DNA from: Macrostomum lignano
Lineage: Eukaryota
Assembly (NCBI GenBank): GCA_002269645.1
Contig: NIVC01003922.1
Location: 5,629-69,628 of the forward strand
Length of the DNA: 64,000 bases
Direction of reading: 5' to 3'
Shown: in pieces, positions 24,006-60,480 of the stretch
Layout: the number at the start of each line of letters is the position of its first letter
Numbering within the stretch: position 1 is the first letter of the stretch
Program-made: the position numbers and the translations under genes
Notes under the pieces: model-generated
The model's input: the letters and a program-made list of their open reading frames with translations, nothing else
Database searches by the model: none
Told to the model about the DNA's origin: nothing

Positions 24006-25029
24006 TCCCGAGACTCATTGTATGGAAGAGGGAGTTCGTGAGTTTAGGCACCGACTTATTTTCCTCTGCTCCTTTCATTCCCTAGCTAGTCACTAGAGTG
24101 CCAAAGGCGAACTATTCAGATGCATTAGATGGTCAAGAGACGATCTTGTACAACAGACGTAGATATAAACATAATTCCTGCTTGAAAGCATATAATGGCA
24201 GTGTATAATTAGAGTTGGTAATTAATAAACTCACCAAATTGAGCTGCTTGCCAAGACACTGATGAATTCAAACAAAGTAGCCTACGAACGTAGCAAGTGG
24301 TTCAGGCTGCAGTTCTAAACACATCTTTATAAGGGCTAGCAGGCACCCCAACCCCACCCTTCGATCGATCGATAAAATTTAGAATAGACACTGCGCGCGG
24401 GTTTGGCCAGGGTAAGGAAATTGCCATGTCAGTCACCCCCGACCTCCCCCAGGTGTGGTGGGCGCACGATCTCGCACGATATATTGTGCGAGATGAAATG
24501 TAGATCTTAGCCTAATTAGCGCAGAAACGAACCCCACCCTGTCTAATGTGTTAATTAACCGTGCACACAATGAGCTGGCTCTTTGAATTTCATGATTTTC
24601 AGTGAGATCTAGTTTACTTCGCTTTGGTTGCTTTTGATTTGCATTTTGCACGTCAATTTTCATTTCATGTTGCATGAGTCGGTGACTCATTTGAGTTGAT
24701 TGTACCCTGTGGGCCTGAACGAGAGTTTGAAAAACCTGCGTCATTTGCCTTTCCATTTGCGATTGATTAAGCGTGCACAGAAATGACAAACTTGGTTAAT
24801 TATGATAACTTATTTCGAGAATTAGTCTGTGTAAGTGAGCTCATTTCAGTAGCTCTGTCAATGCTCTAGGGTGGCTGTTTTCAATTTTGCTGAGTAATTG
24901 TGTGCAAAAAAAACAATATATTATACTCGAATGTCGAGAACACACCTAGGTCGTATTGCACATCTTCACCAGAGTTCCCCTTCAAATTCGGCTTGTGCAC
25001 CAAAAACGTATGCATCTCCCTCTGTCCTA

Positions 25030-25400
25030 TATCTCCGCCCTCACCCGCCCTCTTCTTCCGCCTCTGCCCACCGCTCTCACCTACCCTCTCTTTTCCCTAG
25101 CCTGCCCTTTTCCTCCGCCCTCTACCGCCGTCTTCCTCCGCCCTCTTCTTCCGCCTTCGCCCACCGCCCTCTCCCTCCCCCCTAGCCTGCCATCTTCCTC
25201 CACCCTCTCTCGCCCTCTTCTTCCGCCCTCTACCGCCGTCTTCCTCCGCCCTCTTCTTCCGCCTTCGCCCACCGCCCTCTCCCTCCCCCCTAGCCTGCCA
25301 TCTTCCTCCACCCTCTCTCGCCCTCTTCTCCCGACCTCTCACGCCGTCTTCCTCCGCCGTCTTCCTCCGCCCTCTTCCTCTGCCCTCTCCCTCCGCCATC
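25030..25400. repeat. Pyrimidine-rich degenerate tandem repeat (about 108-nt period)
   Basis: tctaccgccgtcttcctccg recurs at 25121 and 25229. Confidence 0.8.
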
Positions 25401-26292
25401 TGTTCTTGTTTTCTAAATTTTATTTTTAGTTTTGCAGCATTGTAAAATAATTTTCAGAAAGTTAAGTTTAAATTTTACAGCGGAAATTAGTTGTGATTTC
25501 TGATTGAACAGTGCAAGTCTCATAAAAATCGGTTAAGCCCTTTTTTATCTAATCGATTACATAGAGCCAAACAAAAAATTTTCACCTGGGAACCAATGAC
25601 TGCCGTAAGTACATGTATTTGATTTTTTAAAGACGATGCACTGGAAGGCGAATTTGACAGGGCAAACTCTCAGTTGATACGAGTATGTTTGCTGATGCGG
25701 TCGGAAAAGTAAAACAAAAATATTATTATTATATAAATGAATGTCTTTCATAATATGCTGTGGAAGAAGACTGTTAAATAAAATGATTTTTTTGAGTAAA
25801 AAAAATTTTAAACAGATTTTGTTATAGTTTGAGCTGAACTTCAACTATAAATGGACAGTTGGTTAATGTATCTGTACAATGTAGCAATGTCCTGCCACCC
25901 CTCTGTCATGCAATAGGCTTGCACATAGAGGTCAGTGGGAACTACAAGTTCAGCGGGAAACACGCGAGCTCAGTCCGAACGACTGCAATTGCCGCATTTG
26001 CAGTTGAAAACGTGAAGGCCCGACGGAGTTTACAATGAGAAGAGAGGGTGTGGAGAACAATGGGGCGCTGCATGGCATTGACAGTACAAGTGTTGACTTC
26101 ATCTGACAATGCGCTTGCCAACTTGGTGAACAGCGGCGGACAAGCAGAGACCCTGAGGAGTAAACAGTTTTGTAATTCATAGATGATTGCGATCTGGGGA
26201 TTGCTTGCTATCTTGGGGATGCTTTTTTAGGGGGAATGCCTGCTATCTTTGCAAAGGCTTTATTTGTATAATTGCCACATCGCTGCTCACGG

Positions 26293-26735
26293 ATGATGGA
26301 GAATGCCCCACCACTGCCTACGGATGCTGGAGAATACCATCACTGCCTACGGATGCTGGATAATGCTCCATCACTGCCTAGGGATGCTGAAGAATGATCC
26401 ATCACTGCCTACGGATGCTGGAGAATGCTCCATCACTGCCTACGGATGCTGGAGAATGACCATCACTCCCTACAGGTGCTGGAAAATCCTTCATCATTGC
26501 CTACGGATGCTGGAGAGTGCCCATCACTGCCTACGGATGCTGGAGAGTGCCCATCACTGCCTACGGATGCTGGAGAATGACCATCACTCCCTACAGGTGC
26601 TGGAGAATGACCATCACTCCCTACAGGTGCTGGAGAATGACCATCACTCCCTACAGGAGCTGGAGAATGCTGCAGCACTGGCACAGGATGATGGAGAATG
26701 CTCCATCACTGCCTACGGATGCTGGAGAATGTCTG
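26293..26735. repeat. Second array of the same 30-nt minisatellite
   Basis: Same unit; the preceding about 300 bp (25985-26292) duplicates 22599-22905. Confidence 0.95.
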
Positions 26736-27544
26736 AGTGCTGCTCATGAATTGTGTTTTATCCTTGCTCATTGCCATTAGGGCCAAGTACATATGTTTAT
26801 GCGAGTAAATAATTCTTCCAACAAGCAATGCATCAAAATGTTTTTGACATTATCAACTAAGAAAATTATTCTAAATATATTTTTGAAATCTTGGAATTCT
26901 TTTAAATTCGTTTTTGAGTCAACAGTTCCCTAAACTTGTCCTAAATTGACTGGAAGAACAAAATGACAAAATAGTACAAAATGCCTTTAGAAAAAAGCAA
27001 AACAACAAGCATCAAGTAAAACGCGGATGTCAAAAACTATTATTGGAGAGCGCTTTCGCCGGTGGATGTTTCTTGGAAAATATAAAGGAGCTGAGGAAGA
27101 ACCGGCACCGAACAGCGAGCTTTGAAATAAACAGTTTTAATTGGGAAGACAGCAAGAAAATACCCAACCTAGAAGCAACGAAAAAGTAAATTAAAGCATT
27201 CGAAGGCACAAAACTGACATTTACAACAAACAAACAAAGCGATCTGGCTGTAGCAAGCATTTTACAGGAGTAATTATTGGCAGTGACAAATGTAAACTAG
27301 CATAATAAAAGTGCATTGCACCTCATCTGCTTTGGAAGATTAAATAAATTATTAACAACTTCATAACAGGCACTTAATCTGCCACCATTTTCAAGAGACT
27401 ATGAATATTTATTAGAACAGATATCCAATTCAGGTAACAACATGAAAATTATGGTTGGTAGGTTGACGAATATTCATAGCTGATATGCCTCGGAGGTTAA
27501 CAAAGCTACCATAAGCATTGAGTCTTAGGATCAAAAGGGAAGAG

Positions 27545-27782
27545 AGTCAGGGGGACACAGCAGGATGAGGGGGGCACAGCAGGGTCAGGGGGACACAGCA
27601 GGGTCAGGGGGACACAGCAGGGTCAGGGGGATCGACACAGCAGGGTCAGGGGGACACAGCAGGGTCAGGGGGACACAGCAGGATCAGGGGGACACAGCAG
27701 GGTCAGGGGGACACAGCAGGGTCAGGGGGACACAGCAGGGTCAGGGGGACACAGCAGGGTCAGGGGACACAGCAGGGTCAGA
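27545..27782. repeat. 19-nt G-rich minisatellite (agggtcagggggacacagc) in the probable PICK1 3' UTR
   Basis: About 12 copies between the PICK1 stop (27833) and a minus-strand AATAAA at 27413-27408. Confidence 0.9.
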
Positions 27783-27832
27783 TCCGACACAAGCCGATCG
27801 CAGAAGCGGCACTGAGAGTCAGGATACGCAGC

Positions 27833-30800
27833 TCAGTCCAGCTGCAGCAGCGGCTCATCAAAGGTCGCCCCGCTGGCAGGCCGGTGCAGCCCCGTTCGAC
27901 TCTGTGAGCGACCTCCGTCGACTTCTTCCCCGGCGCCGCCGCCGTCGGTGCAGTCCAGCATTTCGTCGTCGCGCTGAGAGGCGCCGAACTCGTCCCCGTC
28001 ATCATCATCGCCGAACTCCTCGTGTAGCGGCGTGGTGCTCTGGTACTGGAACGTGTTCTTAGTCAGGTCCATCTCGATTGGGAAAATTCTGCACGCCTTC
28101 ATCATCTCATGACAGTCGGTGTGGTACGTGCTCATGGCCTGCACGAGGCGCTGCAGCTGCGAGACCGTGTCCTGAACTGCGGGGGCGAGTGGGATCACGG
28201 AGACTCGTGCTCAAACTGAGGATCTGGGAGATGCTCTGCTCAAACTGAGGATCTGGGAGATGCTTTGCTCAAACTGAGGATCTGGGAGATGCTCTGCTCA
28301 AACTGAGGATCTGGGAGATGCTTTGCTCAAACTGAGGATCTGGGAGATGCTTTGCTCAAACTGAGGATCCGGGAGATGCTCTGCTCAAACTGAGGATCTG
28401 GGAGATGCTTTGCTCAAACTGAGGATCTGGGAGATGCTCTGCTCAAACTGAGGATCTGGGAGATGCTTTGCTCAAACTGAGGATCCGGGAGATGCTCTGC
28501 TCAAACTGAGGATCTGGGAGATGCTTTGCTCAAACTGAGGATCTGGGAGATGCTCTGCTCAAACTGAGGATCTGGGAGATGCTTTGCTCAAACTGAGGAT
28601 CTGGGAGATGCTTTGCTCAAACTGAGGATCCGGGAGATGCTCTGCTCAAACTGAGGATCTGGGAGATGCTTTGCTCAAACTGAGGATCTGGGAGATGCTC
28701 TGCTCAAACTGAGGATCTGGGAGATGCTTTGCTCAAACTGAGGATCCGGGAGATGCTCTGCTCAAACTGAGGATCTGGGAGATGCTTTGCTCAAACTGAG
28801 GATCTGGGAGATGCTCTGCTCAAACTGAGGATCTGGGAGATGCTTTGCTCAAACTGAGGATCTGGGAGATGCTCTGCTCAAACTGAGGATCTGGGAGATG
28901 CTTTGCTCAAACTGAGGATCTGGGAAATGCTTTGCTCAAACTGAGGATCTGGGAGATGCTTTGCTCAAACTGAGGATCTGGGAGATGCTTTGAACTCAAA
29001 CTGAGGATCTAGGAGATGCTTTGCTCAAACTGAGGATCTGGGAGATGCTTTGCTCAAACTGAGGATCTGGGAGATGCTTTGCTCAAAATGAGGATCTGGG
29101 AGATGCTTTGCTCAAACTGAGGATCTGGGAGATGCTTTGCTCAAACTGAGGATCTGGGAGATGCTCTGCTCAAACTGAGGATCTGGGAGATGCTTTGCTC
29201 AAACTGAGGATCTGGGAGATGCTTTGCTCAAACTGAGGATCGGGAGATGCTTTGCTCAAACTGAGGATCTGGGAGATGCTCTGCTCAAACTGAGGATCTG
29301 GGAGATGCTTTGCTCAAACTGAGGATCGGGAGATGCTTTGCTCAAACTGAGGATCTGGGAGATGCTCTGCTCAAACTGAGGATCTGGGAGATGCTTTGCT
29401 CAAACTGAGGATCTGGGAGATGCTTTGCTCAAACTGAGGATCTGGGAGATGCTTTGCTCAAACTGAGGATCTGGGAGATGCTCTGCTCAAACTGAGGATC
29501 TGGGAGATGCTCTGCTCAAACTGAGGATCTGGGAGATGCTTTGCTCAAACTGAGGATCTGGGAGATGCTCTGCTCAAACTGAGGATCTGGGAGATGCTTT
29601 GCTCAAACTGAGGATCTGGGAGATGCTTTGCTCAAACTGAGGATCCGGGAGATGCTCTGCTCAAACTGAGGATCTGGGAGATGCTTTGCTCAAACTGAGG
29701 ATCTGGGAGATGCTCTGCTCAAACTGAGGATCTGGGAGATGCTTTGCTCAAACTGAGGATCCGGGAGATGCTCTGCTCAAACTGAGGATCTGGGAGATGC
29801 TTTGCTCAAACTGAGGATCTGGGAGATGCTCTGCTCAAACTGAGGATCTGGGAGATGCTTTGCTCAAACTGAGGATCTGGGAGATGCTCTGCTCAAACTG
29901 AGGATCTGGGAGATGCTTTGCTCAAACTGAGGATCTGGGAAATGCTTTGCTCAAACTGAGGATCTGGGAGATGCTTTGCTCAAACTGAGGATCTGGGAGA
30001 TGCTTTGCTCAAACTGAGGATCTGGGAGATGCTTTGCTCAAACTGAGGATCTGGGAGATGCTTTGCTCAAACTGAGGATCTGGGAGATGCTTTGCTCAAA
30101 CTGAGGATCTGGGAGATGCTTTGCTCAAACTGAGGATCTGGGAGATGCTTTGCTCAAAATGAGGATCTGGGAGATGCTTTGCTCAAACTGAGGATCTGGG
30201 AGATGCTTTGCTCAAACTGAGGATCTGGGAGATGCTCTGCTCAAACTGAGGATCTGGGAGATGCTTTGCTCAAACTGAGGATCTGGGAGATGCTTTGCTC
30301 AAACTGAGCATCTGGGAGATGCTTTGCTCAAACTGAGGATCTGGGAGATGCTTTGCTCAAACTGAGGATCTGGGAGATGCTTTGCTCAAACTGAGGATCT
30401 GGGAGATGCTTTGCTCAAACTGAGGATTTGGGAGATGCTTTGCTCAAACTGAGGATCTGGGAGATGCTTTGCTCAAACTGAGGATCTGGGAGATGCTTTG
30501 CTCAAACTGAGGATTTGGGAGATGCTTTGCTCAAACTGAGGATCTAGGAGATGCTTTGCTCAAACTGAGGATCTGGGAGATGCTTTGCTCAAACTGAGGA
30601 TCTGGGAGATGCTTTGCTCAAACTGAGGATCTGGGAGATGCTGTGCTCAAACTGAGGATTTGGGAGATGCTTTGCTCAAACTGAGCATCTGGGAGATGCT
30701 TTACTCTCAAACTGAGGATCTGGGAGATGCTTTACTCTCAAACTGAGGATCTGGGAGATGCTTTGCTCAAACTGAGGATCTGGGAGATGCTTTGCTCAAA

Positions 30801-33800
30801 CTGAGGATCTGGGAGATGCTTTGCTCAAACTGAGGATCTGGGAGATGCTTTGCTCAAACTGAGGATCTGGGAGATGCTTTGCTCAAACTGAGGATCTGGG
30901 AGATGCTTTGCTCAAACTGAGGATCTGGGAGATGCTCTGCTCAAACTGAGGATCTGGGAGATGCTTTGCTCAAACTGAGGATCCGGGAGATGCTCTGCTC
31001 AAACTGAGGATCTGGGAGATGCTTTGCTCAAACTGAGGATCTGGGAGATGCTCTGCTCAAACTGAGGATCTAAGACAGCGGCTCACCATGCTTATTATCC
31101 AGCAGCTCGATCTTCACCAGCACATCGTTCCGCATTTTGGCGAACCGGGCTCGGGCCTCTTGGCGGCAGCGCAGAATCAGCCTGTGGTTTGAGGGGCGGA
31201 TAAAAAGTAGTTATTGGGGGCGGATAATGAATGATTCTCGGGGGGCGGATAATGGGTGATTCTGGGGGGCAGATAATGGGTGATTTTAGGGCGGATAATG
31301 GGTGATTCTGGGCGGATAATGGGTGATTCTGGGGCGGATAATGGGTGATTCTGGGGCGGATAATGGGTGATTCTGGGGCGGATAATGGGCGATTCTGGGG
31401 CGGATAATGGGTGATTCTGGGGCGGATAATGGGTGATTCTGGGGCGGATAATGGGCGATTCTGGGGCGGATAATGGGCGATTCTGGGGCGGATAATGGGT
31501 GATTCTAGGGCGGATAATGGGTGATTCTGGGGCGGATAATGGGTGATTCTGGGGCGGATAATGGGTGATTCTGGGGCGGATAATGGGTGATTCTGGGGCG
31601 GATAATGGGCGATTCTGGGGCGGATAATGGGCGATTCTGGGGCGGATAATGGGCGATTAGGCGGAAACAGGGAAAAGGACATAAATTTAGTGATTACTGT
31701 AACCTCACCTGTACTCATAGTTCCCCGTCTCCACTCTGTACAGAGGCTCCTGCAGTGCAATGTAGCTGTACTCTTCATCGTCCATCTCCTTCACCTTGAG
31801 GCAGTAGGACTGAAACATCAAATTATTTGATGTAATTACGATCTGTCATAACAAAAACAAGATTAACAATAACTATAAATAACAGTGAGTGTAAGCTTAC
31901 CAAGTATTCAAACTTGCTATCCAGGTACTTCTTAATTGTCAGTTTGGTATCTGGCACAGCCTTAGTAACAAAGGTGTTCATATCGCTGATCATCTGAAAA
32001 ATTTATATTAAATAAAAGTATTAAAATCCCGATATGTACCGCATACGACGTAACTATGCAGGAAACGCATAGCAACAAAAGATGACCAAAGTCAAGTCAG
32101 CTGACCCCCATGACGTGCCTTGACCCCATGACAGGGCTTGACCCCCTGACAGGGCTTGACCTCCATGACAGGGCTTGACCCTATGACAGACATTGACCCT
32201 ATGACAAACCTTGACCCTCAGGACAGGGCTTGACCTCCCTTGACAGGGCTTGACCCCCCCTTGACAGGGCTTGACCCCCCCCCTGACAGGGCTTGACCTC
32301 CATGACAGGGCTTGACCCCCATGACAGAGCTTGACCCCCATGACAGGGTTTGACCCCCCATGACAGGGCTTGACCGACCCCCATTACAGAGCTTGACCGA
32401 CCCCCATGACAGAGCTTGACCCCCATGACAGAGCTTGACCTCCATGACAGAGGTGGTCCGCACCGGCTTAATAGTTCTCAAGCAGTCGATGGCCGCCTGC
32501 TCCATCCGCCTGTGGATGCTGCCAAAGTGCGAGAAGGCCTCTGAGGCTCGCGGCTGCGGCTCCTTCACCCCGATCTCGGAGAACACCTCGCCGAAGGCCC
32601 GCTGCACCTGGCTGAGCCGGTAGAAGGACTTGATGAGCGCCTTGGCATGGTTCATCAGGCCGAAGAACATCCCGGCTGTGCTGTTCATCTCCTCCAGCTT
32701 CTTGATGAGGCCGTCTACGGAGGATTGAGGATGCTTGCTGCGTATTCATGTTCATAACTAAAGCTGTTATTTGGATGGGTTTCCTACATACATGTAAAGG
32801 ATCTGAACTCCCAGATTCAGGAGGTGGACTCTCAGTTTTGGATGTGGACTCTCAGATTCGGAATGTGGACTCCCAGATTCAGGAGTTGGACTCTCAGATT
32901 CGGAATGTGGACTCTCAGATTCGGAATGTGGACTCTCAGATTCAGGAGGTGGACTCTCAGATTCGGAATGTGGACTCTCAGATTCAGGAGGTGGACTCTC
33001 AGATTCGGAATGTGGACTCTCAGATTCAGGAGGTGGACTCTCAGTTTTGGATGTGGACTCTCAGATTCAGGAGGTGGACTCTCAGATTCAGGAGGTGGAC
33101 TCTCAGTTTTGAATGTGGACTCTCAGATTCAGGAGGTGGACTCTCAGTTTTGGATGTGGACTCTCAGATTCGAAATGTGGACTCCCAGATTCAGGAGGTG
33201 GACTCTCAGATTCGAAATGTGGACTCCCAGATTCGGAATGTGGACTCCCAGATTCAGGAGGTGGACTCTCAGATTCGGAATGTGGACTCCCAGATTCAGG
33301 AGGTGGACTCTCAGATTCGGAATGTGGACTCTCAGATTCGGAATGTGGACTCTCAGATTCGGAATGTGGACTCCCAGTTTCAGGAGGTGGACTCTCAGAT
33401 TCAGGAGGTGGATTCTCAGATTCAGAATGCGGACTCAGAATTTGAGGCAGAACAGCCAGCACACCCACCGTTGACCAGGATAGCGCGGGACAGCCCCAGT
33501 GCATCAGCCGTAGTGCTGGACATGGACTCAACCACTCGGTGCTTTGCCTTCTTCAGCACTGAAAAAATAAGTAAATAAATAGCACTGAAATAATTTTAAT
33601 AAAAGTAAATTGTTTTTTATTAAAAAATCGTTTCATACTACTTACCTATATCCAAAGACTTGCCCTGCTTAGGGTCGGCGTGAAGACAGTTGTACCCAAT
33701 GGTTACTTGGCTCTGCAAGTGTTGGCAATATTATAGGTGTTTAGTAGGGGGCTAAAAAGCACTCTGGCTCTGGAAAAGCACTCTGGAACTAAATCTCTCT

Positions 33801-36607
33801 GGCTCTGGGAATGCACTCTGGAACTAAATCTCTGGCTCTGGGAAAGCACTCTGGAACTAAATCTCTCTGGCTCTGGGAATGCACTCTGGAACTAAATCTC
33901 TCTGGCTCTGGGAAAGCACTCTGGAACTAAATCTCTCTGGCTCTGGGAATGCACTCTGGAACTAAATCTCTCTGGCTCTGGGAAAGCACTCTGGAACTAA
34001 ATCTCTCTGGCTCTGGGAATGCACTCTGGAACTAAATCTCTCTGGCTCTGGGAAAGCACTCTGGAACTAAATCTCTCTGGCTCTGGGAAGGCACTCTGGA
34101 ACTAAATCTCTCTGGCTCTGGAAAGCACTCTGGAACTAAATCTCTCTGGCTCTGGGAAGGCACTCTGGAACTAAATCTCTCTGGCTCTGGGAAAGCACTC
34201 TGGAACTAAATCTCTCTGGCTCTGGGAAGGCACTCTGGAACTAAATCTCTCTGGCTCTGGGAAAGCACTCTGGAACTAAATCTCTCTGGCTCTGGGAAAG
34301 CACTCTGGAACTAAATCTCTCTGGCTCTGGGAAGGCACACTGGAAATAAATCTCTCTGGCTCTGGGAAAGCACTCTGGAACTAAATCTCTCTGGCTCTGG
34401 GAAGGCACACTGGAAATAAATCTCTCTGGCTCTGGCCTCTGGGAAAGCACTCTGGAACTAAATTTCTCTGGCTCTGGGAAGGCACACTGGAACTAAATCT
34501 CTCTGGCTCTGGGAAGGCACTCTGGAACTAAATCTCTCTGGCTCTGGGAAGGCACTCTGGAACTAAATCTCTCTGGCTCTGGGAAGGCACACTGGAAATA
34601 AATCTCTCTGGCTCTGGGAAAGCACTCTGGAACTAAATCTCTCTGGCTCTGGGAAAGCACTCTGGAACTAAATCTCTCTGGCTCTGGGAAGGCACTCTGG
34701 AACTAAATCTCTCTGGCTCTGGGAAAGCACTCTGGAACTAAATCTCTCTGGCTCTGGAAGGCACACTGGAACTAAATCTCTCTGGCTCTGGGAAAGCACT
34801 CTGGAACTAAATCTCTCTGGCTCTGGGAAGGCACTCTGGAACTAAATCTCTCTGGCTCTGGGAAAGCACTCTGGAACTAAATCTCTCTGGCTCTGGGAAG
34901 GCACTCTGGAACTAAATCTCTCTGGCTCTGGGAAAGCACTCTGGAACTAAATCTCTCTGGCTCTGAGAAGGCACACTGGAACTAAATCCCTCTGGCTCTG
35001 GGAAGGCACACTGGAACTAAATCTCTCTGGCTCTGGGCACTCTGGTACTAAACAGTTGCACAATTCTCAGCATTTTAGAAAGCTTTGATATTACTCCAAA
35101 AGCTTAAAGTCAATCGTTACTCAGCTCACCTTGAAGCTCTGAATGAACCTGGCCACCTCCACTTTACTTTTGGACTTGACGCTCTGCCCGTTGACGCTGA
35201 CGATTTCGTCGCCACTTTTCAGCGTGCCATCCCTAGCGGCGGGGGTGTTGTCAAAGATCTGCACAACGTACAGGCAGGGACAGTAGGGCGCCCCGCCACC
35301 GATGCTGATCCCGATCAGATTCTGCCCGTCCTTTTCCAGGGTCACCACGCCGGAGGTGACCCGCATGCCCCTTGAGCGCGAGTGTGAAAAGTTTCAATCA
35401 GTTGGATCGCTAGCAAATTTACACTTTTAAAGCTGTTATTAAAAGTACTTGCACCGCTTAAGTGCATGCAGGAGATAGTTTATTTAAATAATGAAACTTC
35501 ACGATTTTGGATATCTCAGTTTTGTATTCCGGATGTGAACTCCGGGAATCAGAATATGAGCTTAGATTATTAGATTATTAGATGAGCTTAGATCTTAGAT
35601 TCAGAATGTGGGTTCGGGTTCTTAGATTCAAGGTGTGGGTTCTTAGATTCAGGGTGTGGGTTCTTAGATTCAAGGTGTGGGTTCTTAGATTCAGAATGTG
35701 GGTTCTTAGATTCAGGTTTGGGTTCTTAGATTCAAGGTGTGGGTTCTTATATTCAGGGTGTGGATTCTTAGATTCAGAATGTGGGTTCTTAGATTCAAGG
35801 TTTGGGTTCTTAGACTCAGGATGTGGATTCTTAGATTCAAGGTGTGGGTTCTTAGATTCAGGGTGTGGGTTCTTAGATTCAGGGTGTGGATTCTTAGATT
35901 CAGAATGTGGGTTTTTTAGATTCAAGGTGTGGGTTCTTAGATTCAGGGTGTGGATTCTTAGATTCAGGATGTGGATTCTTAAGTTCAGGCTGTGGATTCT
36001 TAGATTCAGGGTGTGGGCTCCTAAATTCAGGGTGTGGGCTCCTAAATTCAGGGTGTGGGTTCCTAAATTCAGGGTGTGGTTTCTTAGATTCAGGGTGTGG
36101 GTTCCTCAATTCAGGGTGTGGGTTCTTAGATTCAGAATGCGGGTTCTTAGATTTAAAGTGTGGGTTCTTGAATCTAGGGTGTGGGTTTTTAGATTTAAGA
36201 CATGGTTTTAATGGGCTCAGAGTTCTATGTTCTAGATAGCTTTCATAAAACTACATTTTTACATTAAAAAGACTGATTTTACAACCACATGATGAAAGCA
36301 TTTTAATGAAAAAAACGATGGCACAAAATATCAAATAAGGACAAACCAAAATTGAACTAGACATAACTGGCCAATGGTTTGGTAAAAGCAGAGACCCTAG
36401 CTAATTCAAAAGAAAAATAGAGTTTCTCTATTCAGAAGCACACTACAAAGTAAAAGAAGTAATCAAGGATTAAAAAGTTTTAGCTAAAAAGTCAAAGTTT
36501 AATTGTTACCTGCGATCTTGAGCAACTTTGCTAAGATCATCCCTATCAGTGGGATCATCACAGTAAGTGCTCAAGGGCAGATAGCCAGGTGGTATGTCAG
36601 GCTCCAT
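27833..36607 (-). CDS. PICK1: PICK1 (PDZ + BAR/arfaptin-homology domain), 9 coding exons, 459 aa
   Basis: Exons 36607-36510, 35370-35130, 33712-33646, 33558-33469, 32714-32464, 31993-31901, 31809-31709, 31181-31087, 28176-27833. All GT-AG, 1380 nt, in frame. Motifs EKDGQNLIGISIGGGAPYCPCLYVVQIFDNTPAA, ADALGLSRAIL, SYCLKVKEMDDEEY, GNYEYRLILRCRQEAR, FPIEMDL. Confidence 0.97.
28208..31071. repeat. 29-nt minisatellite (ctcaaactgaggatctgggagatgctttg), about 98 copies, PICK1 intron 8
   Basis: Period 29 (28210, 28239...); very homogeneous. Confidence 0.98.
31195..31660. repeat. 22-nt minisatellite (ggggcggataatgggtgattct), PICK1 intron 7
   Basis: Period 22 (31331, 31353...), about 21 copies. Confidence 0.95.
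32102..32450. repeat. 18-22-nt minisatellite (cccatgacagggcttgacc), PICK1 intron 5
   Basis: Core gacagggcttgac recurs with variable C-run length. Confidence 0.92.
32804..33440. repeat. 21-nt minisatellite (gtggactctcagattcaggag / ...cggaat), PICK1 intron 4
   Basis: Period 21, about 30 copies. Confidence 0.95.
33759..35050. repeat. 35-nt minisatellite (gcactctggaactaaatctctctggctctgggaaa), PICK1 intron 2
   Basis: Period 35 (33916, 33951...), about 37 copies. Confidence 0.97.
35590..36200. repeat. 21-nt minisatellite (gggtgtgggttcttagattca), PICK1 intron 1
   Basis: Period 21, about 29 copies. Confidence 0.95.
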
Positions 36608-38483: not shown

Positions 38484-39920
38484 TCCGCGCTTCAGTATTA
38501 GCATCAGTTGATAGGCAAGATTCTATAGCAATAGATTCAGCATGAGCAGTGCGCCGTTGTACAAATTCTGTCTCAAGACATCTAGTTTCTTCATTCATTT
38601 CAAAAACAGCTTCTCTTTCAGCTAACATTATTTGAGAAGAGCAATATGCGTGGGCTATTGCATCTGCACCATGAATCTCAATTTCTGCATTTTGCATAGC
38701 TAGATCTCTATTAGAATCAACAACCTCTGGATTTTGCATTGCCATTAATAGTCCCTCTCTGTGTGAGCTTGCTGAACATTGGGATGGTGGTGCTTCTAGT
38801 TCCCTTGAATGTGCTGTAGCTGCACCATCACCTGATCCTTGGGCTGCACTTAAGATTGCTGTTAATTTTCTTCTAATATCCAATGTGCACAAGAACAATC
38901 ATTCACTTCTCTAGGAGTTACATGACCAAGTTTCCATTGTGTAAAGAGCAATGGCTTTTGCTCTTCAGTTGCAAAAACGGGGCACCAGTTGATGGAATAG
39001 TCTTCATGGCCTTTTTCATCCCATTCACGTGCAGGACTCAGTATATAGTCAGGTGCTGGTCTATCTTTAAGTGAAATATATAATGACTCAAAGAATGTAC
39101 ACCAGTTGTTCTGTGTACCTCTTGCATAAATGATCATGTCGTGAATTCTATGTTGAATTATAGCAGTCAAATCCTCATTGATTGGAATTCTATCGACAAA
39201 CGTAGGTCGCCTGTTAGATAGGTGCATCTTTGCTAGACGTAACTTTGCAATGCTATTTAGGTAGTCTGCGGCATCTTCATTTCTTGAATAGTCTTTCTGA
39301 TACAGAAGCATAAGGGCCATAGGACTTTTGCCATTACCATTCTTCAGTACATTTGGGTCACTTGGAAGTTGTTTACTTGCTGATTTGAAAAATTCGAAAA
39401 TTGAAGATTGCGATGCCCTAGCTGGTGCTTCCTTAGACAGTAGTCCTTGACCAGTTTTACCTGTATACCCAATTGCAGAGTCAGTGAAGTACATGTCTGC
39501 TGTACTTATTCTATCCTTTGATGCAATTACAAAAAAATCAGTTTTTTCCTTCATTGCAGTGCAATAGAAGTCTGCAGAAAAAGTAATGACTAGTTTTCTG
39601 AACTGGCCATGATATTCCTGGACACCAATCAGCAAGTAGTCACGTAGCCTTTGTCATAGTCAGGCTTTGTCATAATGCAGAAGTTGAACGCTTCCACTAC
39701 ATTATCTGGATCTGTTGCTGTTGATGTAGATTTTCTCAAACATACAAGCTTTAATTCAACAAATTCCGAAAACTCTTGAGAGCCAAGATAGGGTCCATCA
39801 GTATTCAGCTCATTTATAACAAAAGTACACAATCTGTCTGGATCAGTCTGACAGTTTATTGAAGCACAGCAGAAACATAGGGCAAGTAGTGCAATTTTGC
39901 AAGAAAAGCTGTACCTTATT
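38467..39920 (-). pseudogene. Secreted lamin-tail-domain (LTD)-like protein, two frameshifts
   Basis: Signal-like KIALLALCFCCASINC, then CTFVINELNTDGPYLGSQEFSEFVELK (VINE..EFxEL, LTD-like). Frameshift near 39650 to LRDYLLIGVQEY...QWKLGHVTPREVNDCSCAHWILEE; frameshift near 38865 to an Ala/Glu-rich tail. AT-rich codons, unlike the host genes. Confidence 0.6.
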
Positions 39921-49400: not shown

Positions 49401-52400
49401 GCTAGAATCATTAATTTCTGAAAACAGTGTAGGAGGTACATGTATGCTAAATTTTGCTGTCAGGTAGTTATAGTTGCATCAAACATCAATGCAGTTTGCA
49501 TTTTTGCTGACATTTTCGTCACAGCATATTTCATACCTAAAAATTACAGTACACCCTTTTCAAGGTTGTGCGCGCCACATGACTTTAAGCTAGGCGCAAA
49601 AAAAAGTGTATGCCAAGTATTTTAAGAGATTAAAAATTTTATATTGCAACAATCAAGGACCTTGTCACCTTTTAACCACTAGCTTATTCTTCAAAATGTT
49701 AGACCTTTCATTATAAACTGGAAGACACTAGTACCTATTTTCAAATTTGTGCCTTCTACAAAATTCAAACCTTTGTATACCAGTTTTTGTGTTATAGATC
49801 ATGGAACTTGGAGAATTTTGTATTCCACTTATAACACAAAACAAGTCAAAGTTTTTGCATGCAGAAGGCATCCTAAAAAGTTGCAAAGTTGTCAAAATTG
49901 CTAAAAAGGTTCTTTATTGTCATTACATGGAAAAAACTTTTGTATTTCAGAGTAAGCAACTTACCTGAAAAAAATTCTATTCCAAAATTGCCATGCAAGG
50001 ATTCCATCTTGGCCTATCTATAGATTATAGTTATCTTAGTACCAATATATTTTGATAACAGTATAACACAAAGTAGCACAACCAGAAATTTTTCATCCTT
50101 GATCTAAAGTATTTATTGCTGAACTTGGCCAAATCTTCTAATTCTTAATCGCCTATAGGCTCACATAGTTAAAACTTTTGGTGGTCAGCACCGTTGGCTT
50201 CAGGTAGACAAGTGCAAGCTGCAATTTTTATTCTATGAAATAAACAGACAAGTAATTAAATGTGCAGCTTCAATTTCCCACACTCAGGTCTCGATTCGGG
50301 CATCAAAACTCCAACCAGCCCAGGCAGTCGCAGCTCCGGGCCAAAATTCAGCAGGATGCCAGGCAGTTCATTGCTAATCGAAAACGTCAAGGAATCAGCG
50401 ATGCCAGACAGTTGCTGCTTCAACGGAAGCCTGACCCTGGTGAGCTCAGCTGTTTGCTGCCTTGCTCAGTTGCTTACTGCTCTCAACTTCAGCTGTCCCA
50501 GTCCCTTCCTCTGGTCCATCTCAAAACCCATCCTCCATCCCATCTCAAACCCCATCCTCCATCCCATCTCAAACCCCATCCTCCATCCCATCTCAAAACC
50601 CATCCTCCATCCCATCTCAAAACCCATCCTCCATCCCATCTCAAACCCCATCTCAAACCCCATCCTTCATCCCATCTCAAACCCCATCCTTCATCCCATC
50701 TCAAACCCCATCCTCCATCCCATCTCAAAACCCATCCTCCATCCGATCTCAAAACCCATCCTCCATCCTATCTTAAACCCCATCTCAAACCCCATCCTCC
50801 ATCCCATCTCAAACCCCATTCTCCATCCCATCTCAAACCCCATCCTCCATCCCATCTCAAACCCCATCCTCCATCCCATCTCAAGCCCCATTCTCCATCC
50901 CATCTCAAACCCCATTCTCCATCCCATCTCAAACCCCATCTCAAACCCCATCCTCCATCCCATCTCAAACCCCATTCTCCATCCCATCTCAAGCCCCATC
51001 CTCCATCCCATCTCAAACCCCATCCTCCATCCCATCTCAAGCCCCATTCTCCATCCCATCTCAAACCCCATCCTCCATCCCATCTCAAGCCCCATTCTCC
51101 ATCCCATCTCAAACCCCATCTCCATACCATCTCAAACCCCATCTCCATCCCATCTCAAGCCCCATCCTCCATCCCATCTCAAACCCCATCTCAAACCCCA
51201 TCCTCCATCCATCTCAAGCCCCATCCTCCATCCCATCTCAAACCCCATCTCAAACCCCATCCTCCATCCCATCTCAAGCCCCATCCTCCATCCCATCTCA
51301 AACCCCATCCTCCATCCCATCTCAAGCCCCATCCTCCATCCCATCTCAAACCCCATTCTCCATCCCATCTCAAACCCCATCCTTCATCCCATCTCAAACC
51401 CCATCCTCCATCCCATTTCAAACCCCATTCTCCATCCCATCTCAAACCCCATTCTCCATCCCATCTCAAACCCCATCCTTCATCCCATCTCAAACCCCAT
51501 TCTCCATCCCATCTCAAACCCCATTCTCCATCCCATCTCAAGCCCCATCCTCCATCCCATCTCAAACCCCATCCTTCATCCCATCTCAAACCCCATCCTC
51601 CATCCCATCTCAAACCCCATTCTCCATCCCATCTCAAACCCCATTCTCCATCCCATCTCAAACCCCATCCTTCATCCCATCTCAAACCCCATCCTCCATC
51701 CCATCTCAAACCCCATTCTCCATCCCATCTCAAGCCCCATCCTCCATCCCATCTCAAACCCCATCCTCCATCCCATCTCAAACCCCATCCTCCATCCCAT
51801 CTCAAACCCCATTCTCCATCCCATCTCAAAACCCATCCTCCATCCCATCTCAAGCCCCATCCTCCATCCCATCTCAAACCCTATCTTAAACCCCATCCTC
51901 CATCCCATTTCAAACCCCATTCTCTATCCCATTTTAAACCCATCCCGAAACCTCAAGCCCACAAAAACCCAAAACGCTGATCACCCAGCCTGCCCCGCAT
52001 TCCCCAGTGCCCAACGAGGTCCCGGAGGCCTTGCCAGTCGCCGAGCCGCTGGTGCCGCTGCTGCTGCCGCAGAAGGTGATCGCTAACGACCGGTACCAGC
52101 CGCCGCCTCCGCCGCGCATTGACTTGGAATACGACCTGCCCCCGGCCCCGCGCTTTGTCGGCTCGCGCGCCGCCGCTCCCCCTGGCCAGCCTGGGAGATT
52201 TTTATCCCAGCACCAGCCGCCGCTGCCACGTCGTCGGCTGGCGACAGCCGCTCCCGTCGCTCAGCCGGCGCCTCGGCAGAATCTGCGCCCTGCGCCCCAG
52301 CTGCCGCCGCAGCCTCATCGCTACGACCAGCCTCCTGGTCGTTACTATCCGGATGAAGATTATTCAGTGGAGCCCGAGGACTTTGCCGAAGAGTATTATT

Positions 52401-53967
52401 ACGAAAGTCCGGCTGGGCATGAATACACCGAAATCATTGACGATCTGGACGAGTATCAGCATCAGCCGCCTGTTGAAGATGAAATCTATGACGATTATGA
52501 GCCGTCCGAGTATGACTATGCTCATGCTGCTGAGATGGAGCCGCGCTATGTTCAGCGCCAGTCGGTTCGCTATGAGCAGCGGCGGCCTCAGCTTGAGCCT
52601 GGCTACCAGTACACCGAGCCGGAGCCAAGCGTTCGCAACGGCGCGTCGACAATGCGGCTGCACCTTCAGGAGCGGCGCCCTGTAGTTGCCGCTACTGCCA
52701 CCGCCGCTGTGCCGCGGGCTCCTCGACCGTCTCGCCCCAGGGCCGCGGCCTCAGCGGCTCTCTACGGTGGCGGCAGCAGCGGCGGTGGTGGCGGGGAGTT
52801 CTTCGACCGCCGCCAGCCCCAGCTGCGTCAAATTGATGCCGACGGCGATGTCGAAATGGTCGCCGCCATGTCGGAGCGTCGGCGACATCGGAGCCGATCG
52901 CCACAGCTGGCGAGGCCGTCGACGGCTTTTTCCGCCGCTGCTGCTGCTGCCGGTGCCCCGTCGCGGTCCAGCGCCGCTCATCGACAGTCGCACCAGGGTT
53001 TGTCGGGGCGCGCCGTCGCTGCTCAGCCTGCCGCTGCTGCTGCCGGTACTTCGTCGGGGCGTTCGACCGAGGACGTCGTCAAGGTTTGCGATTGTGTTTT
53101 ATATTTTGGCGTAACAAGTCTCCTGCTGGTAAGCCACTGTATAGAATGATTTAGAGTAGGATAATTTCGAATTTTAGTAAGTTTTTTTAATTCATAAGCT
53201 TCATCGAAATTTCCCTTCCCAAACCCTTTGTTTTAAATACCTTACCCAGATCACAGATCTCAAATCCCAAACTGCAGATCTCAAATCCCAAACTGCAGAT
53301 CTCAAATCCCAAACTGCAGATCTCAAATCCCAAACTGCAGATCTCAAATCCCAAACTGCAGATCTCAAATCTCAAACTGCAGATCTCAAATCCCAAACTG
53401 CAGATCTCAAATCCCAAACTGCAGATCTCAAATCCCAAACTGCAGATCTCAAATCCCAAACTGTAGATCTCAAATCTCAAACTGCAGATCTCAAATCCCA
53501 AACTGCAGATCTCAAATCCCAAACTGCAGATCTCAAATCCCAAACTGCAGATCTCAAATCCCAAACTGCAGATCTCAAATCCCAAACCTAAGATTAACCA
53601 ATCTGTCTTCCCTTGCCACTGGCACATCAGAGCGCCGCGCCAGACCACTGGGCTACGGCCTTCCATCTGGCTTACCCACCTTACCTGCTGTTTGATATTC
53701 CCACCTTCACAGGCCTATAAGGTGTCAATCAGCGGTCTGCACCACAGCGTCACCCGCGACGACATCTACGAGCTGTTCTCGTCCGTTGGCTCGGTGCGCA
53801 AGTGCTCGATGCTGGGCAGCGGCAAGGCGGAGGTCGTGTTCCCCGACAGGGCTGAGGCCGAGACGGCAGTGAAGCGGTACAACAACCGCGAGCTGGACGG
53901 GGTGCCGATGCGGCTGCAGATTTCTATGGTTGGCATCCGACTGCAGTCGGGCAAGAGTTCCAGGTGA
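46460..53967 (+). CDS. POLDIP3: POLDIP3/SKAR-like (DAR repeats plus C-terminal RRM), 4 coding exons, about 509 aa
   Basis: Exons 46460-46506 (MNLSLEDII, donor GTAAGT), 50288-50439 (SRFG...DARQFI...DARQLL), 52008-53083, 53713-53967 (YKVSISGLHHSVTRDDIYELFSSVG...AEVVF...YNNRELDGVPM). Phases compatible, 1530 nt. Exon 1 linkage and the exact 3' end are less certain. Confidence 0.85.
47614..47968. repeat. About 178-bp tandem dimer in POLDIP3 intron 1
   Basis: Two diverged copies sharing tatgcttattaagcaac...gcggcgtgtatgcaag...atgcaattttcc. Confidence 0.85.
48900..49088. mobile_element. Foldback MITE with target-site duplication
   Basis: 33-bp outer arms (2 mismatches) and 19-bp inner arms (1 mismatch); flanked by GCCTCTGCC at 48892-48900 and 49088-49096. 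Confidence 0.85.
50515..51940. repeat. 24-nt C-rich minisatellite (ccatctcaaaccccatcctccatc), POLDIP3 intron 2
   Basis: Period 24 with interspersed 12-nt half units; consensus unit has no G. Confidence 0.97.
53228..53590. repeat. 21-nt minisatellite (agatctcaaatcccaaactgc), POLDIP3 intron 3
   Basis: Period 21, about 17 copies. Confidence 0.96.
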
Positions 53968-55520: not shown

Positions 55521-56919
55521 ACCTGGGGAAGGCCAGTGACCATCGAAGTCAGAACTGATGCAGACACGTGGTCGACGTGCTGATGAAATTTGGAGACTTG
55601 GCAAGGCTGCACTGAGGCGCAGTGCTATTTGGCGCACAGGGGTGTACTGAATACACTAGCACTTATGGGAAAAATCCGACCTTCTGGCAGAATCGTCGAA
55701 TATCTCGACGCTCCGGAGGGCTGGCGACTTGATTCTTGTTTGAGAAGGTGCGCAACAAAAAGTTAGCCCGTGTTCTTGAATTTCGTGTGCCTGCGTTGCT
55801 CCGTTCCGGCGCAGCAGAAAATTGTCGGGGGGGGGGGGGATTTTTCGCCCCTCTTGGTAGTTCGACGGGCGGAAAAATGACTTGGTATTCCTACTGTTAA
55901 CAACCACGCTGGAAAAGAGATAGGAGAATCATGGATAGAGTTGGATTAAATCTACCACTTGTTGACCAACTGGTTTCTGAATGAAAACTTCATCATTTTA
56001 CCATTTTACCTCTTAGTTCGCACAGTCTTGTTCAAAAGAAACGAGCAGGACTTCAATTCAAGCAATAAGAAATCTCAGCGCTTGCGGAAATTCAATTCAA
56101 ACGAAGTCCCTTTTCTATTGAAACAGATGAAATTCGATCTAGAGAAATTAGCCCTAGAGAGCCTTGATGATAGTCTGTCACTGTTGCTTATAATAGTATA
56201 TTTCCGAGGCTGCTGCCCCACGATCTCTTCCTCGAATTCTGCTTCAACTTCATTGAGTTCATCCTCAGTCTTCTAGCAATTCGTCTTCAATCTGATCTTC
56301 AGCACTCATGTTGATTCTAGCTTCTCTATACCCTCTCCTCTCTACATTCCATTGCCCTCAGGTCATGCGCTGGGTTGTCTGGCCCTTATGGTAGCAATGT
56401 TTTCCGGCCCCTGGTCTAGCGCAATGAAACTGTTTATAGAATTGAGCATGGCAAATGCAATCTAAACTTGAGTTGCAGTCGGACAGGCAGGATTGTTTTC
56501 TTTGGCACGAAGCTTAGAAAAATAAAATGCAACGAAGACAATAGAAAGAGAGACCTGCGTGCGACCTAAAAAATAAAAAATATTGCAGTAATTTTCTTGA
56601 CAAGTTCCAGATTCAATGCCATGCATTTTGTGACCCTGGCCCTCGGCCCGAGCCACTTCAGTCTCACCATCAGGAGCCTCAAGGCTAGGTAGCATTGAGC
56701 AGGCTTGTATGAAAAAGAAAAAGCTCAGATGCTTACGTCTAGATGTCGCAAAATTTGCGCAGTCTCTGTATGCATTCAATTGCCTAATTGCTATGCCATT
56801 CAAGTTGAGAGGCCGGTTATGCATTGACCCACTCCCCGAAATTTAGGTTAAGAGCACGTTTTTTAGGGCTTTGTTTTGCAAGTAAGCAAAAACGTGCTCC
56901 CCGCCCCAGATTGCTTGTC

Positions 56920-56950
56920 TATAAATTCGACCGCCTCGAGCTCACAAGAG
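56920..56950 (+). promoter_or_regulatory. TATA box and probable TSS of the Arg-rich precursor gene
   Basis: TATAAA at 56920-56925, about 90 nt upstream of the ATG at 57012. Confidence 0.6.
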
Positions 56951-57011
56951 CCCCAAGACCCAAGACGGGATCGGCTCTGCAAAGCGAATCTCTCTGAATT
57001 CAGCAGCAGCC

Positions 57012-57464
57012 ATGAAGTGGCAGTTCGCCCTCGGTCTCCTCCTGTGCATGGCGCTGGCGGTCTACGCCAGCCCGGCTGAGCACAAAGAAGAAGACGAAAA
57101 CCTCGAAAAGGTGTCCTCCTCCGCACTGGCCGATCTGGCCGAGCCCGACCAGGCCGAGCCCGACCTTGCCGAGTCCGACCTGGCCGAGCCCGACCTGGCC
57201 GAGTCCGAGTTGGCCGAGTCCGATGAGAGCACAAATCCGGAAGAAAAGCTCCGAATTAGGTTCGGCAGGCGGCGCTACTACCGCAGGCGCATCTTCCGCA
57301 GGCGCATCTTCCGTAGGCGCTTCTACCGCAGGCGCATCTTCCGCAGACGCATCTTCCGTAGGCGCTTCTACCGCAGGCGCATCTTCCGCAGGCGCATCTT
57401 CCGCAGGCGCATCTTCCGCAGGCGCATCTTCCGCAGGAGGCGCTGCTTCCGCTACCGCGGCTAA
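57012..57464 (+). CDS. Secreted prepropeptide: signal peptide, acidic repeat propiece, Arg-rich cationic repeat peptide (antimicrobial-peptide-like)
   Basis: MKWQFALGLLLCMALAVYA signal; 61-aa segment with 22 D/E; 70-aa tail with 41 Arg ending YRG. Intact, GC-rich host-like codons; TATA upstream, AATAAA at 57562-57567. Confidence 0.9.
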   Translation: MKWQFALGLLLCMALAVYASPAEHKEEDENLEKVSSSALADLAEPDQAEPDLAESDLAEPDLAESELAESDESTNPEEKLRIRFGRRRYYRRRIFRRRIFRRRFYRRRIFRRRIFRRRFYRRRIFRRRIFRRRIFRRRIFRRRRCFRYRG

Positions 57465-57870
57465 ATGAACCGGATCGTTTTCTGACTGATCGCCTTGGAC
57501 ATTCTGACTAATCTTCTTTGACAAATAATCTTGACTAAAATCAATGACAAAATATCTCAGTAATAAATATCAGCTATAGTGACTGTTTAATATCCTGGAT
57601 TTTGAAGTTTCGCCAAGCAAAATACACCCGGCAGTTTGAAAGCACAAGCGAATATTTTTCAATATTATAAAAATATTCTCAGCATCTCTCTCCGCTCTTC
57701 CCTTTCTGGCCATGCTCAACTATTTGTGTTAGTGCGTTGTTTGAATTCATTAAATGCTAATAGAAACCACGCACTCGTACTATAATAAAACATATATAGC
57801 TACGCGCATCAGAATGCTAAAAATCATCTTTTGGTTTAGTCTGAAGCTTTGATGTGTGTCTCAATAGCAA

Positions 57871-58157
57871 GGGGATTGTAGCCCAGTGGTCAGAGCGTCG
57901 GTCTCGCCACTTTAAGGTGGGGCTCTATTCCCGATCTAACTGAAACAGTTTGTGTCCTTAAGCAAGACACTTAACTCTGCATTGCTTCAGTTCACCCAGC
58001 TGTAAAATGGGTGCTAGCATTAGCTGGGGTAATTGAGGGTGTGTGTGGCGGCCCCAGTCCTTGGACTGAACAGCCGAACGCAGCCTTGAGATGCGCCGCG
58101 CAATAGCTGCGGTTGAGCTGTCGGTTGCACATCTGGCCCGAATGGGGCAGATGCAAA
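57871..58157 (+). mobile_element. tRNA-derived SINE with Nin/CORE-like central domain
   Basis: A box TAGCCCAGTGG (57879), degenerate B box GGCTCTATTCC (about 57921), then TGTGTCCTTAAGCAAGACACTTAAC...CACCCAGCTGTAAAATGGGT. Confidence 0.75.

Positions 58158-59339: not shown

Positions 59340-60480
<1,141 letters not shown>

Follow-up and report, generated by a model that had tools for sequence, protein, structure and literature searches.

A Macrostomum lignano gene for a predicted secreted prepropeptide with an acidic block and an arginine/aromatic repeat tail: a tentative host-defence-type precursor

We examined a small gene at positions 57012..57464 (+) in a 64,000-nucleotide (nt) stretch of the Macrostomum lignano genome (GenBank contig NIVC01003922.1, positions 5,629 to 69,628 of the forward strand; this whole stretch is called the window below). 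The gene is an intact, single-exon gene, and by sequence comparison it is a member of a Macrostomum-restricted and unnamed multigene family of small, predicted secreted prepropeptides. An earlier note on this DNA had described an intact secreted precursor with a signal peptide, an acidic block and an Arg/aromatic tail, and this layout was borne out. That the gene is real, a functional-looking member of a transcribed flatworm family, we consider highly probable. By analogy with known precursors, we tentatively propose, with a rough probability of 0.4, that its product may be a taxon-restricted, probably amidated cationic peptide precursor of the host-defence type. All coordinates are positions of the window unless one of the loci L001-L004 is named.

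The gene and its product

The open reading frame (ORF) runs from ATG to TAA through 150 codons and encodes a protein of 150 amino acids (aa). The product reads MKWQFALGLLLCMALAVYA, the predicted cut, SPAEHKEEDENLEKVSSSALADLAEPDQAEPDLAESDLAEPDLAESELAESDESTNPEEKLRIRFG, and then (RRRYY)(RRRIF)2(RRRFY)(RRRIF)2(RRRFY)(RRRIF)4RRRRCFRYRG. Its N-terminus, MKWQFALGLLLCMALAVYA followed by SPAE, starts with a basic n-region (Lys), continues with 16 hydrophobic core residues whose mean Kyte-Doolittle value is 1.86, and has V/A at -3/-1. The acidic block (residues 20-79) holds 7 Asp and 15 Glu, the 22 acidic residues counted in the earlier note, and six 15-nt units at 57129-57218 encode (A/P/S)(D/E)(L/Q)AE in it, where about six pentapeptides had been claimed. 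Residues 80-150 contain 41 Arg, 12 Phe, 5 Tyr, 9 Ile, 1 Cys and zero acidic residues. The Arg count given previously was correct, on a span of 71 rather than 70 residues, and the "about twelve" RRR units resolved into eleven followed by RRRRC. Without its signal the protein carries a net charge of +22.

Both halves are built from 15-nt repeat units, as had been noted: Tandem Repeats Finder (TRF) delimited an array of 6.3 copies at 57130-57223 in the acidic block and one of 10.5 copies at 57281-57437 in the tail, the latter reading also as a 45-nt higher-order repeat from 57271. All repeat periods of the gene are multiples of 3. Of the eleven tail units, seven have the same DNA sequence, and the expansion is therefore recent. 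Three Arg-codon changes separate tail units, all synonymous (CGC>CGT twice, AGG>AGA once), and the sole amino-acid change after RRRYY is IF>FY, confined to two CGT units. In this copy the acidic and the tail blocks both grew by recent in-frame 15-nt tandem duplication.

The family in Macrostomum lignano

The one clear relative recovered at first among 5.8 billion proteins was the M. lignano hypothetical protein P0001 (E=1.6e-17; BLASTP E=2e-25 over residues 1-90), and an exhaustive HMMER scan recovered a second M. lignano cluster, P0113. A profile made from the N-terminal parts alone returned the same two clusters, P0113 at 9e-28 and P0001 at 4e-26. The first (P0001/P0160) comprises PAA75715, PAA58863 and PAA48540 (BOX15_Mlig025063g1, Mlig008283g1 and Mlig022283g1) and the second (P0113) PAA67680, PAA77466 and PAA79674 (BOX15_Mlig027113g1 and Mlig019489g1). 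The clear relatives among the 5.8 billion sequences were M. lignano proteins only, and the paralogues are annotated solely as hypothetical proteins. The gene models of M. lignano were built from an RNA sequencing (RNA-seq)-based, genome-guided transcriptome (PMC5730564); since the paralogue models are derived from RNA-seq, members of the family are transcribed. One of these models, PAA75715 (96 aa), lacks 27 nt (RRRFYRRYY) that are present in an uninterrupted 105-aa ORF, whose full length is annotated as PAA58863; the gap probably reflects a polymorphism in repeat number, with transcript and genome differing, or else an annotation artefact.

The claim that the peptide was undescribed held in part. 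No description of the family was found in the literature, and string searches of main texts and some supplements for the repeat motifs and the Mlig gene identifiers gave nothing relevant, although the paralogues do exist as annotated hypothetical proteins. The window protein had no Pfam, NCBIfam or PDB match, sequence searches giving noise only.

One locus, L001 (NIVC01000866.1), holds two intact members and two decayed copies. The first intact member (copy 1, L001:719-1165) encodes a protein of 148 aa that has 42 Arg and 28 Tyr, carries (RRRYY)-type repeats and ends in YYG, and the second (copy 2, L001 10001-10318) is a 105-aa ORF identical to P0160. In the decayed copy at 11990-12127, the promoter and the first nine codons are followed by unrelated sequence. 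The decayed third copy, at 13700-13922, has lost its promoter and signal peptide through a deletion, ends prematurely (in RIRFRFRKHRYFRRRSQF and a stop) and is colinear with the intact gene region of the window at 74-84% DNA identity. A further protein, P0161, is a truncated family member, and P0113 is encoded at three other loci, L002-L004. No DNA of more than 85% identity was found between the window and 80 kb of M. lignano loci; judged by this divergence, the window would be a divergent paralogous region or, more probably, come from a second Macrostomum species.

The M. lignano paralogues are true homologues. The signal peptide is identical at 18 of 19 residues to that of P0160/P0001 and to that of P0113. 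The intact members have in common an acidic region with ALADxAEP...ELAESD motifs and a junction of P-E-(E/L)-K plus a hydrophobic residue; a single-exon coding sequence, the promoter and blocks of the untranslated regions (UTRs) are shared as well. A Gly codon precedes the stop in all four intact flatworm members (RYRG, AYHG, RYYG and FRLG); of these, copies 1 and 2 of L001 (YYG, YHG) keep the aromatic-x-Gly-stop ending and P0113 (RLG) keeps the Gly. Signal, acidic region and junction, Gly-ended tail and promoter/UTR blocks thus all place the gene in a Macrostomum MKWQFALGLLLC-type prepropeptide family.

What varies is size and tail. The proteins have 85-150 aa, and the homology and HMM searches recovered the paralogues of variable repeat number that the earlier note had anticipated, their Arg/aromatic tails ranging from 12 to 80 residues. 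Paralogue tails are Tyr/His-rich; the window copy alone has 11 RRR-xx units using Ile/Phe, and it has 6 acidic units against about 1-2 in the paralogues, to which its DNA is only 74-84% identical. At the other extreme, the tail of P0113 reads KWFSRWFRITY-RRR-GGERRYLRSYFRLG, with a basic run of only 12 residues. Judged from these sequences, the family is a birth-and-death family, partly clustered and hypervariable in its cationic part.

Coding potential and constraint

The length of the ORF is no evidence here, because the +2 frame (100 aa) and an antisense frame (57000..57524, 174 aa) are open too and the window is saturated with minisatellites, which create ORFs of up to 608 aa. The gene is more than a chance frame because it has paralogues. 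We compared ratios of nonsynonymous to synonymous substitution (dN/dS) in both reading directions over the alignable signal and acidic part only, which is a small sample. For the window gene against L001 copy 2 (61 codons; Fisher p=0.006), dN/dS was 0.35 in the sense and 1.19 in the antisense direction, and for L001 copy 2 against P0113 the values were 0.42 and 1.31. The window gene against P0113 gave 0.62 and 0.66, a comparison in which the frame test did not discriminate. Within the acidic block, dN/dS against L001 copy 2 was 0.28. These values are supportive of purifying selection on the alignable part. Synonymous divergence (dS) was only 0.08 in the signal-peptide codons (57012-57068) compared with 1.09 in the adjoining acidic block (57069-57248; p=0.002), which points to gene conversion or to nucleotide-level constraint on the signal segment.

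We consider it extremely improbable that another strand or frame is the coding one, be it the antisense ORF or the +2 frame. These two frames are open, and the antisense ORF exceeds the sense ORF in length, but it lacks an ATG at its start (TTG is listed) and shows no signal peptide. The TATA box and the AATAAA signal both point to the plus strand, the gene models of M. lignano run in the sense direction, and two of the three comparisons give an antisense dN/dS of about 1.2-1.3.

It is less far-fetched, though unlikely, that the gene is a functionless orphan ORF, transcribed or silent, a family copy inflated by replication slippage and not yet disabled. More than 15 large tandem arrays lie in the window, the tail expansion is very recent, as the identity of most of its units indicates, other frames are open, and the protein is absent from public gene sets. 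Gene death is moreover frequent in the family, as the decayed pair in L001 and the truncation of P0161 show. On the other hand, the window copy shows no damage to its start, signal, frame, Gly-stop ending, TATA box, upstream motifs, UTR blocks or poly(A) signal. Every variant unit keeps RRR plus two hydrophobic residues, the Arg-codon changes are silent, the repeat periods preserve the frame, and the alignable part appears to be under purifying selection.

Comparison with known precursors

The order of signal, anionic block and cationic block is one that several precursors of host-defence peptides also have, as the earlier note had pointed out. The closest parallels are in cnidarians and molluscs. 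Hydra arminins and periculins likewise have a signal and a bipartite anionic/cationic precursor, are genus-restricted, and form clustered, fast-evolving paralogues, some of them silent (PMC10945409); the active fragment arminin 1a-C has an amidated C-terminus (PMC6217004). Unlike the window protein, arminins have a Lys/Arg-rich cationic part in which tandem pentapeptide arrays are absent, and they show no detectable sequence similarity to it; periculins are marked by a Cys pattern. The myticalins of Mytilus, also a multigene family confined to one taxon, have a signal and an anionic region that are conserved, use Gly as amide donor and include pseudogenes among the functional copies, and their hypervariable, linear, Arg/Tyr-containing cationic peptide with PRY repeats is comparable to the tail described here (PMC5577615). 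They differ in placing the cationic peptide first and the anionic extension last, in a conserved Lys-Arg (KR) site between the blocks, in being Pro-rich and in their three-exon genes, and no homology was seen.

Frog-skin (dermaseptin-superfamily) and alpha-defensin precursors share the succession of signal, anionic propiece and cationic mature peptide. In these precursors a conserved preproregion stands beside variable mature peptides, and many frog peptides are amidated via a terminal Gly. Unlike them, the window protein has no KR site, its tail forms neither an amphipathic helix nor a six-Cys fold (it has one Cys), and there is no homology. In searches of 5.8 billion and 1.84 billion sequences, no homology to arminins, myticalins or dermaseptins was found, and animal matches outside Macrostomum were of low complexity only, namely the jellyfish protein P0130 and the unplaced, eukaryote-like P0156. 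On the present comparisons the resemblance to arminin-, myticalin- and dermaseptin-type precursors is one of layout, and these are analogues rather than homologues. The family is a new and unrelated one on a known design (signal, anionic, cationic, amide), unusual in that both blocks are in-frame 15-nt tandem repeats.

Several other assignments were considered and rejected. An alpha- or beta-defensin was discarded on the single Cys of the tail as against a six-cysteine domain, and a protamine or sperm nuclear basic protein on the N-terminal signal peptide and the 60-residue acidic block; the earlier note had excluded the latter on the ground of secretion, and we agree. A bacterial Arg/aromatic repeat protein with a twin-arginine translocation (Tat) or Sec signal was dismissed in view of the eukaryotic promoter and poly(A) signals, the flatworm paralogues and a signal without an RR motif. 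As for a multi-copy neuropeptide prohormone of the flatworm FMRFamide-like peptide (FLP) type, the eleven units lack Gly.

Proposed function and alternatives

We propose that the protein would enter the secretory pathway, where the signal would be removed after Ala19. The acidic block might partly offset the polycationic tail during transport and granule storage, and it may come off near the conserved PEEK-plus-hydrophobic junction, a possible processing point on sequence grounds. The terminal Gly would give rise to a C-terminal amide via peptidylglycine alpha-amidating monooxygenase (PAM); the Gly had been taken as an amidation signal before, and this fits its retention in all four intact members while the rest of the tail diverges. 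The freed, non-amphipathic Arg/aromatic polycation would then act on extracellular polyanionic targets, most likely microbial envelopes, and an antimicrobial tail would work in the manner of non-amphipathic Arg/aromatic peptides. Short amidated Arg/aromatic peptides are known antimicrobials. The antimicrobial, cell-penetrating or coacervate-forming (adhesive or seminal) roles suggested in the earlier note are all conjectural.

The host-defence reading draws on how the family varies as well as on the layout. The precursor has oppositely charged regions, a hypervariable tail, a conserved prepro part and clustered, taxon-restricted paralogues, and its near-invariant signal DNA, diverged acidic block and hypervariable cationic tail form a pattern of the kind known from secreted defence peptides and from toxins. 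A frozen signal beside a hypervariable mature part is likewise stated for the myticalins (PMC5577615). As to processing, a homologue of prohormone convertase 2 (PC2) is present and essential in M. lignano (PMC4490696).

A number of results weigh against this proposal. No KR or RR dibasic site lies at the boundary between acidic block and tail, only a conserved single Lys (PEEK, then L), and the cleavage of the propiece is an assumption because no dibasic KR site separates the blocks. The RRR triplets, which run all through the tail, could themselves serve as convertase sites, and it would then be cut to pieces. No amphipathic-helix signature is seen in the tail: its hydrophobic moment at 100 degrees is 0.06 compared with 0.35-0.56 for magainin, melittin and LL-37, on which we rejected an amphipathic helix, and the single-sequence AlphaFold2 model, with one long tail helix and an acidic coil, is of low confidence (predicted local distance difference test 64, predicted template modelling score 0.24). 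Nor does the acidic charge balance the tail. The earlier note had held that a propiece of the same period keeps the tail inactive, and this found no support in the family: paralogues lack the matching periodicity, acidic (15-22) and basic (5-43) counts of the members are uncorrelated, and the window protein remains strongly cationic. Charge matching was accordingly rejected, the correlation of acidic and basic counts being 0.21 across 22 analogous proteins and none within the family. Selection on this repeat expansion is not demonstrable because the repeats are so young, and the frame test failed to discriminate in the comparison of the window gene with P0113. Finally, the exact window protein is absent from public protein sets, and the Mlig gene identifiers are absent from the paper supplements searched.

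The uncleaved protein would suit a different role, somewhat unlikely in our estimate, in which the anionic-cationic diblock condenses through charge and cation-pi contacts (Arg with Tyr/Phe "stickers") into granule content destined for extracellular material or the ejaculate. Its site might then be an adhesive or cement gland, the prostate or seminal secretion, the eggshell or rhabdite secretion. The composition is that of a diblock polyampholyte, the 148-aa paralogue of L001 is notably rich in Tyr and Arg, and there is no clear cleavage site between the blocks. Arg/Tyr-rich marine adhesive proteins resemble this composition. Adhesion in Macrostomum is charge-based, with Mlig-ap1 carrying huge Lys/Arg-rich regions and with polyanions and cations disturbing attachment and release (PMC6410801). 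Many prostate-limited transcripts of M. lignano encode secreted proteins without homologues (PMC5977470), and reproductive genes evolve fast in the genus (PMC8662610, PMC7336406). However, proteins this tiny, one of them with a basic run of a dozen residues, are a poor fit to bulk material. Retention of the terminal Gly, like the pairing of an ultra-conserved signal with a hypervariable tail, is a hallmark of bioactive peptides and not of structural proteins. Nor was a link found between the family and any gland-specific transcript list; the prostate screen offers no matchable sequences.

A prohormone of the neuropeptide or hormone type, in which the Arg clusters are convertase sites that release very short peptides and one amidated C-terminal peptide, seems very unlikely. 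Signal peptide, acidic spacer, basic clusters and terminal Gly do follow prohormone grammar, the essential PC2 homologue would be at hand, and one plausible amidated peptide could come from the tail of P0113. The FMRFamide-like peptides of flatworms have aromatic-Arg-Phe-amide as their ending. But cleavage at RRR followed by carboxypeptidase trimming leaves the dipeptides IF, FY and YY without a Gly amide donor, and there is one Gly only, after the whole array. Paralogous neuropeptides, moreover, usually keep their sequences, in contrast to the hypervariable tails of this family.

If the tail is an active amidated polycation, as the host-defence reading would have it, it would be the equivalent in nature of synthetic Arg/Trp and Arg/Phe peptides and a clean case of potency evolving through in-frame minisatellite expansion. 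To our knowledge, almost no gene-encoded host-defence peptides have been characterised in flatworms; the layout itself would not surprise a specialist, and the family would fill a gap in flatworm effector biology. A gland material or seminal protein would instead be relevant to temporary adhesion by charge or to sexual conflict within Macrostomum. Either way, a conserved signal with a hypervariable tail marks a fast-evolving effector, not a housekeeping gene. M. lignano is a model with RNA interference, transgenesis and in situ tools; the family is directly testable there, and its conserved promoter of about 200 bp is a ready-made reporter.

The same block design in unrelated organisms

Full-length profile searches, which were swamped by low-complexity Arg-rich proteins and whose matches we treated as analogues, turned up an export signal, an acidic spacer and (RRR + aromatic/hydrophobic pair)n in unrelated organisms. 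The alpha-proteobacterial examples include a Mesorhizobium "protamine-2 (modular protein)" and others with a Tat signal and RRRYW repeats, and the cyanobacterial ones come from Desmonostoc and Chlorogloeopsis (WP_085951650). A jellyfish example was found in Sanderia malayensis (EP00794_P003107, RRRWx/RRRVV), and P0156, from an unplaced ENA contig, ends in RRRLFRRRTFRRRFG (RRRFG). The repeat chemistry of the analogues includes RRRYW, RRRLF and RRRWx. The signals of the bacterial analogues, whether Tat or Sec, bear no relation to that of the flatworm proteins, and none of 17 ends in Gly, compared with all four intact family members and P0156; the Gly ending is thus confined to animal-type sequences. 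No Pfam or NCBIfam family was found for the analogues, and the gene neighbourhoods of two bacterial ones were uninformative. We regard the bacterial, cyanobacterial, cnidarian and unplaced analogues as convergent and the matches as compositional.

The recurrence of this design in bacteria, cyanobacteria and jellyfish raises the question of how cells export extreme polycations. A bolder idea, which we hold to be quite unlikely, is that of a general-purpose secreted polycation cassette invented independently in flatworms, jellyfish, alpha-proteobacteria and cyanobacteria, with the acidic block as a built-in chaperone for a toxic, condensate-forming Arg/aromatic polymer. Were it true, the flatworm family would be the first genetically tractable animal example, with repeat number tuning potency.

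Promoter and untranslated regions

The TATA box and AATAAA signal reported in the earlier note are both present (Table 1). About 160 nt 5' of the ATG are conserved among the paralogues, comprising TCTATAAAT, two ACGT-core motifs (ACGTG) and the 5' UTR blocks. Window positions 56852-57097 are about 79% identical to L002-L004, and the 5' UTR part aligns likewise with L001 copy 2. The TATA box is identical in L001 copy 2 and L002 and reads TCTATAAGT in L001 copy 1. The window contains a single AAACGTG-N21-TCTATAAAT combination, where 0.01 would be expected. Both arms of the upstream inverted repeat carry an ACGT core, and ACGT-core motifs stand at equivalent positions in the M. lignano paralogue promoters; we infer that the repeat is a candidate shared pair of transcription-factor sites with a regulatory role. 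In L001 copy 2 an AATAAA lies about 35 nt past the stop.

Table 1. Features of the gene and its flanks.
Feature	Position	Strand	Basis
Upstream element: perfect 12-nt inverted repeat GAGCACGTTTTT / AAAAACGTGCTC, arms 56852-56863 and 56888-56899, 24-nt spacer	56852..56899	+	sequence
TATA box TCTATAAAT, 86 nt 5' of ATG	56918..56926	+	sequence
Putative 5' UTR with conserved blocks CTCTGCAAAGCGAATCTCTCTGA and CAGCAGCAGCC ahead of ATG; start approximate (about 25-30 nt past TATA)	56950..57011	+	alignment
Signal peptide, codons 1-19 (MKWQFALGLLLCMALAVYA), predicted cut after Ala19	57012..57068	+	sequence rules and paralogue match
Acidic block, codons 20-79, net charge -19	57069..57248	+	composition; homologous to the paralogues' ALADMAEPELAESD region
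Junction EEKLRIRFG; motif P-E-(E/L)-K + hydrophobic residue kept in the family	57240..57266	+	alignments
Eleven 15-nt units: RRRYY (1), RRRIF (8), RRRFY (2)	57267..57431	+	sequence, TRF
C-terminal end RRRRC-FRYRG and TAA stop; terminal Gly codon 57459-57461	57432..57464	+	sequence
Conserved 3' UTR block ttctgactgatcgccttgga	57480..57499	+	matches cttctgactgatcgcattgga after the stop of the P0113 gene in L002
Poly(A) signal AATAAA (putative), 98 nt past the stop	57562..57567	+	sequence

Surroundings of the gene

Minisatellite and microsatellite arrays are dense at 22892-36211, 50516-51945, 53254-53587 and 59896-60428. Examples are a 29-nt unit in 98.6 copies (28208-31071), a 35-nt unit in 36 copies (33762-35037) and 24/48/72-nt units at 50516-51945, and the arrays give rise to spurious long ORFs such as that at 50260..52086 (608 aa).

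Longer non-repetitive ORFs lie at 2788-3882 (-), 10632-11144 (+, 170 aa), 38862-39635 (-) and 52007-53149 (+). Three window ORFs that were scanned (364, 257 and 380 aa) had no Pfam match, and a protein look-up gave no exact match for the 364-aa product. These ORFs are possibly mobile-element remnants or unannotated exons.

ARAGORN and Rfam found no RNA genes in the window and no match for a non-coding block at 57806-58139, downstream of the gene. This block is 74-83% identical to L001 16383-16734, and its tRNA-like 5' end (ggggattgtagcccagtggtcagagcg...) suggests an element resembling a short interspersed nuclear element. A 470-nt stretch at 8104-8569 matches intergenic DNA close to the P0113 gene of M. 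lignano (L003 4472-4917, L004 2090-2535) at 69% identity and is probably a shared old repeat.

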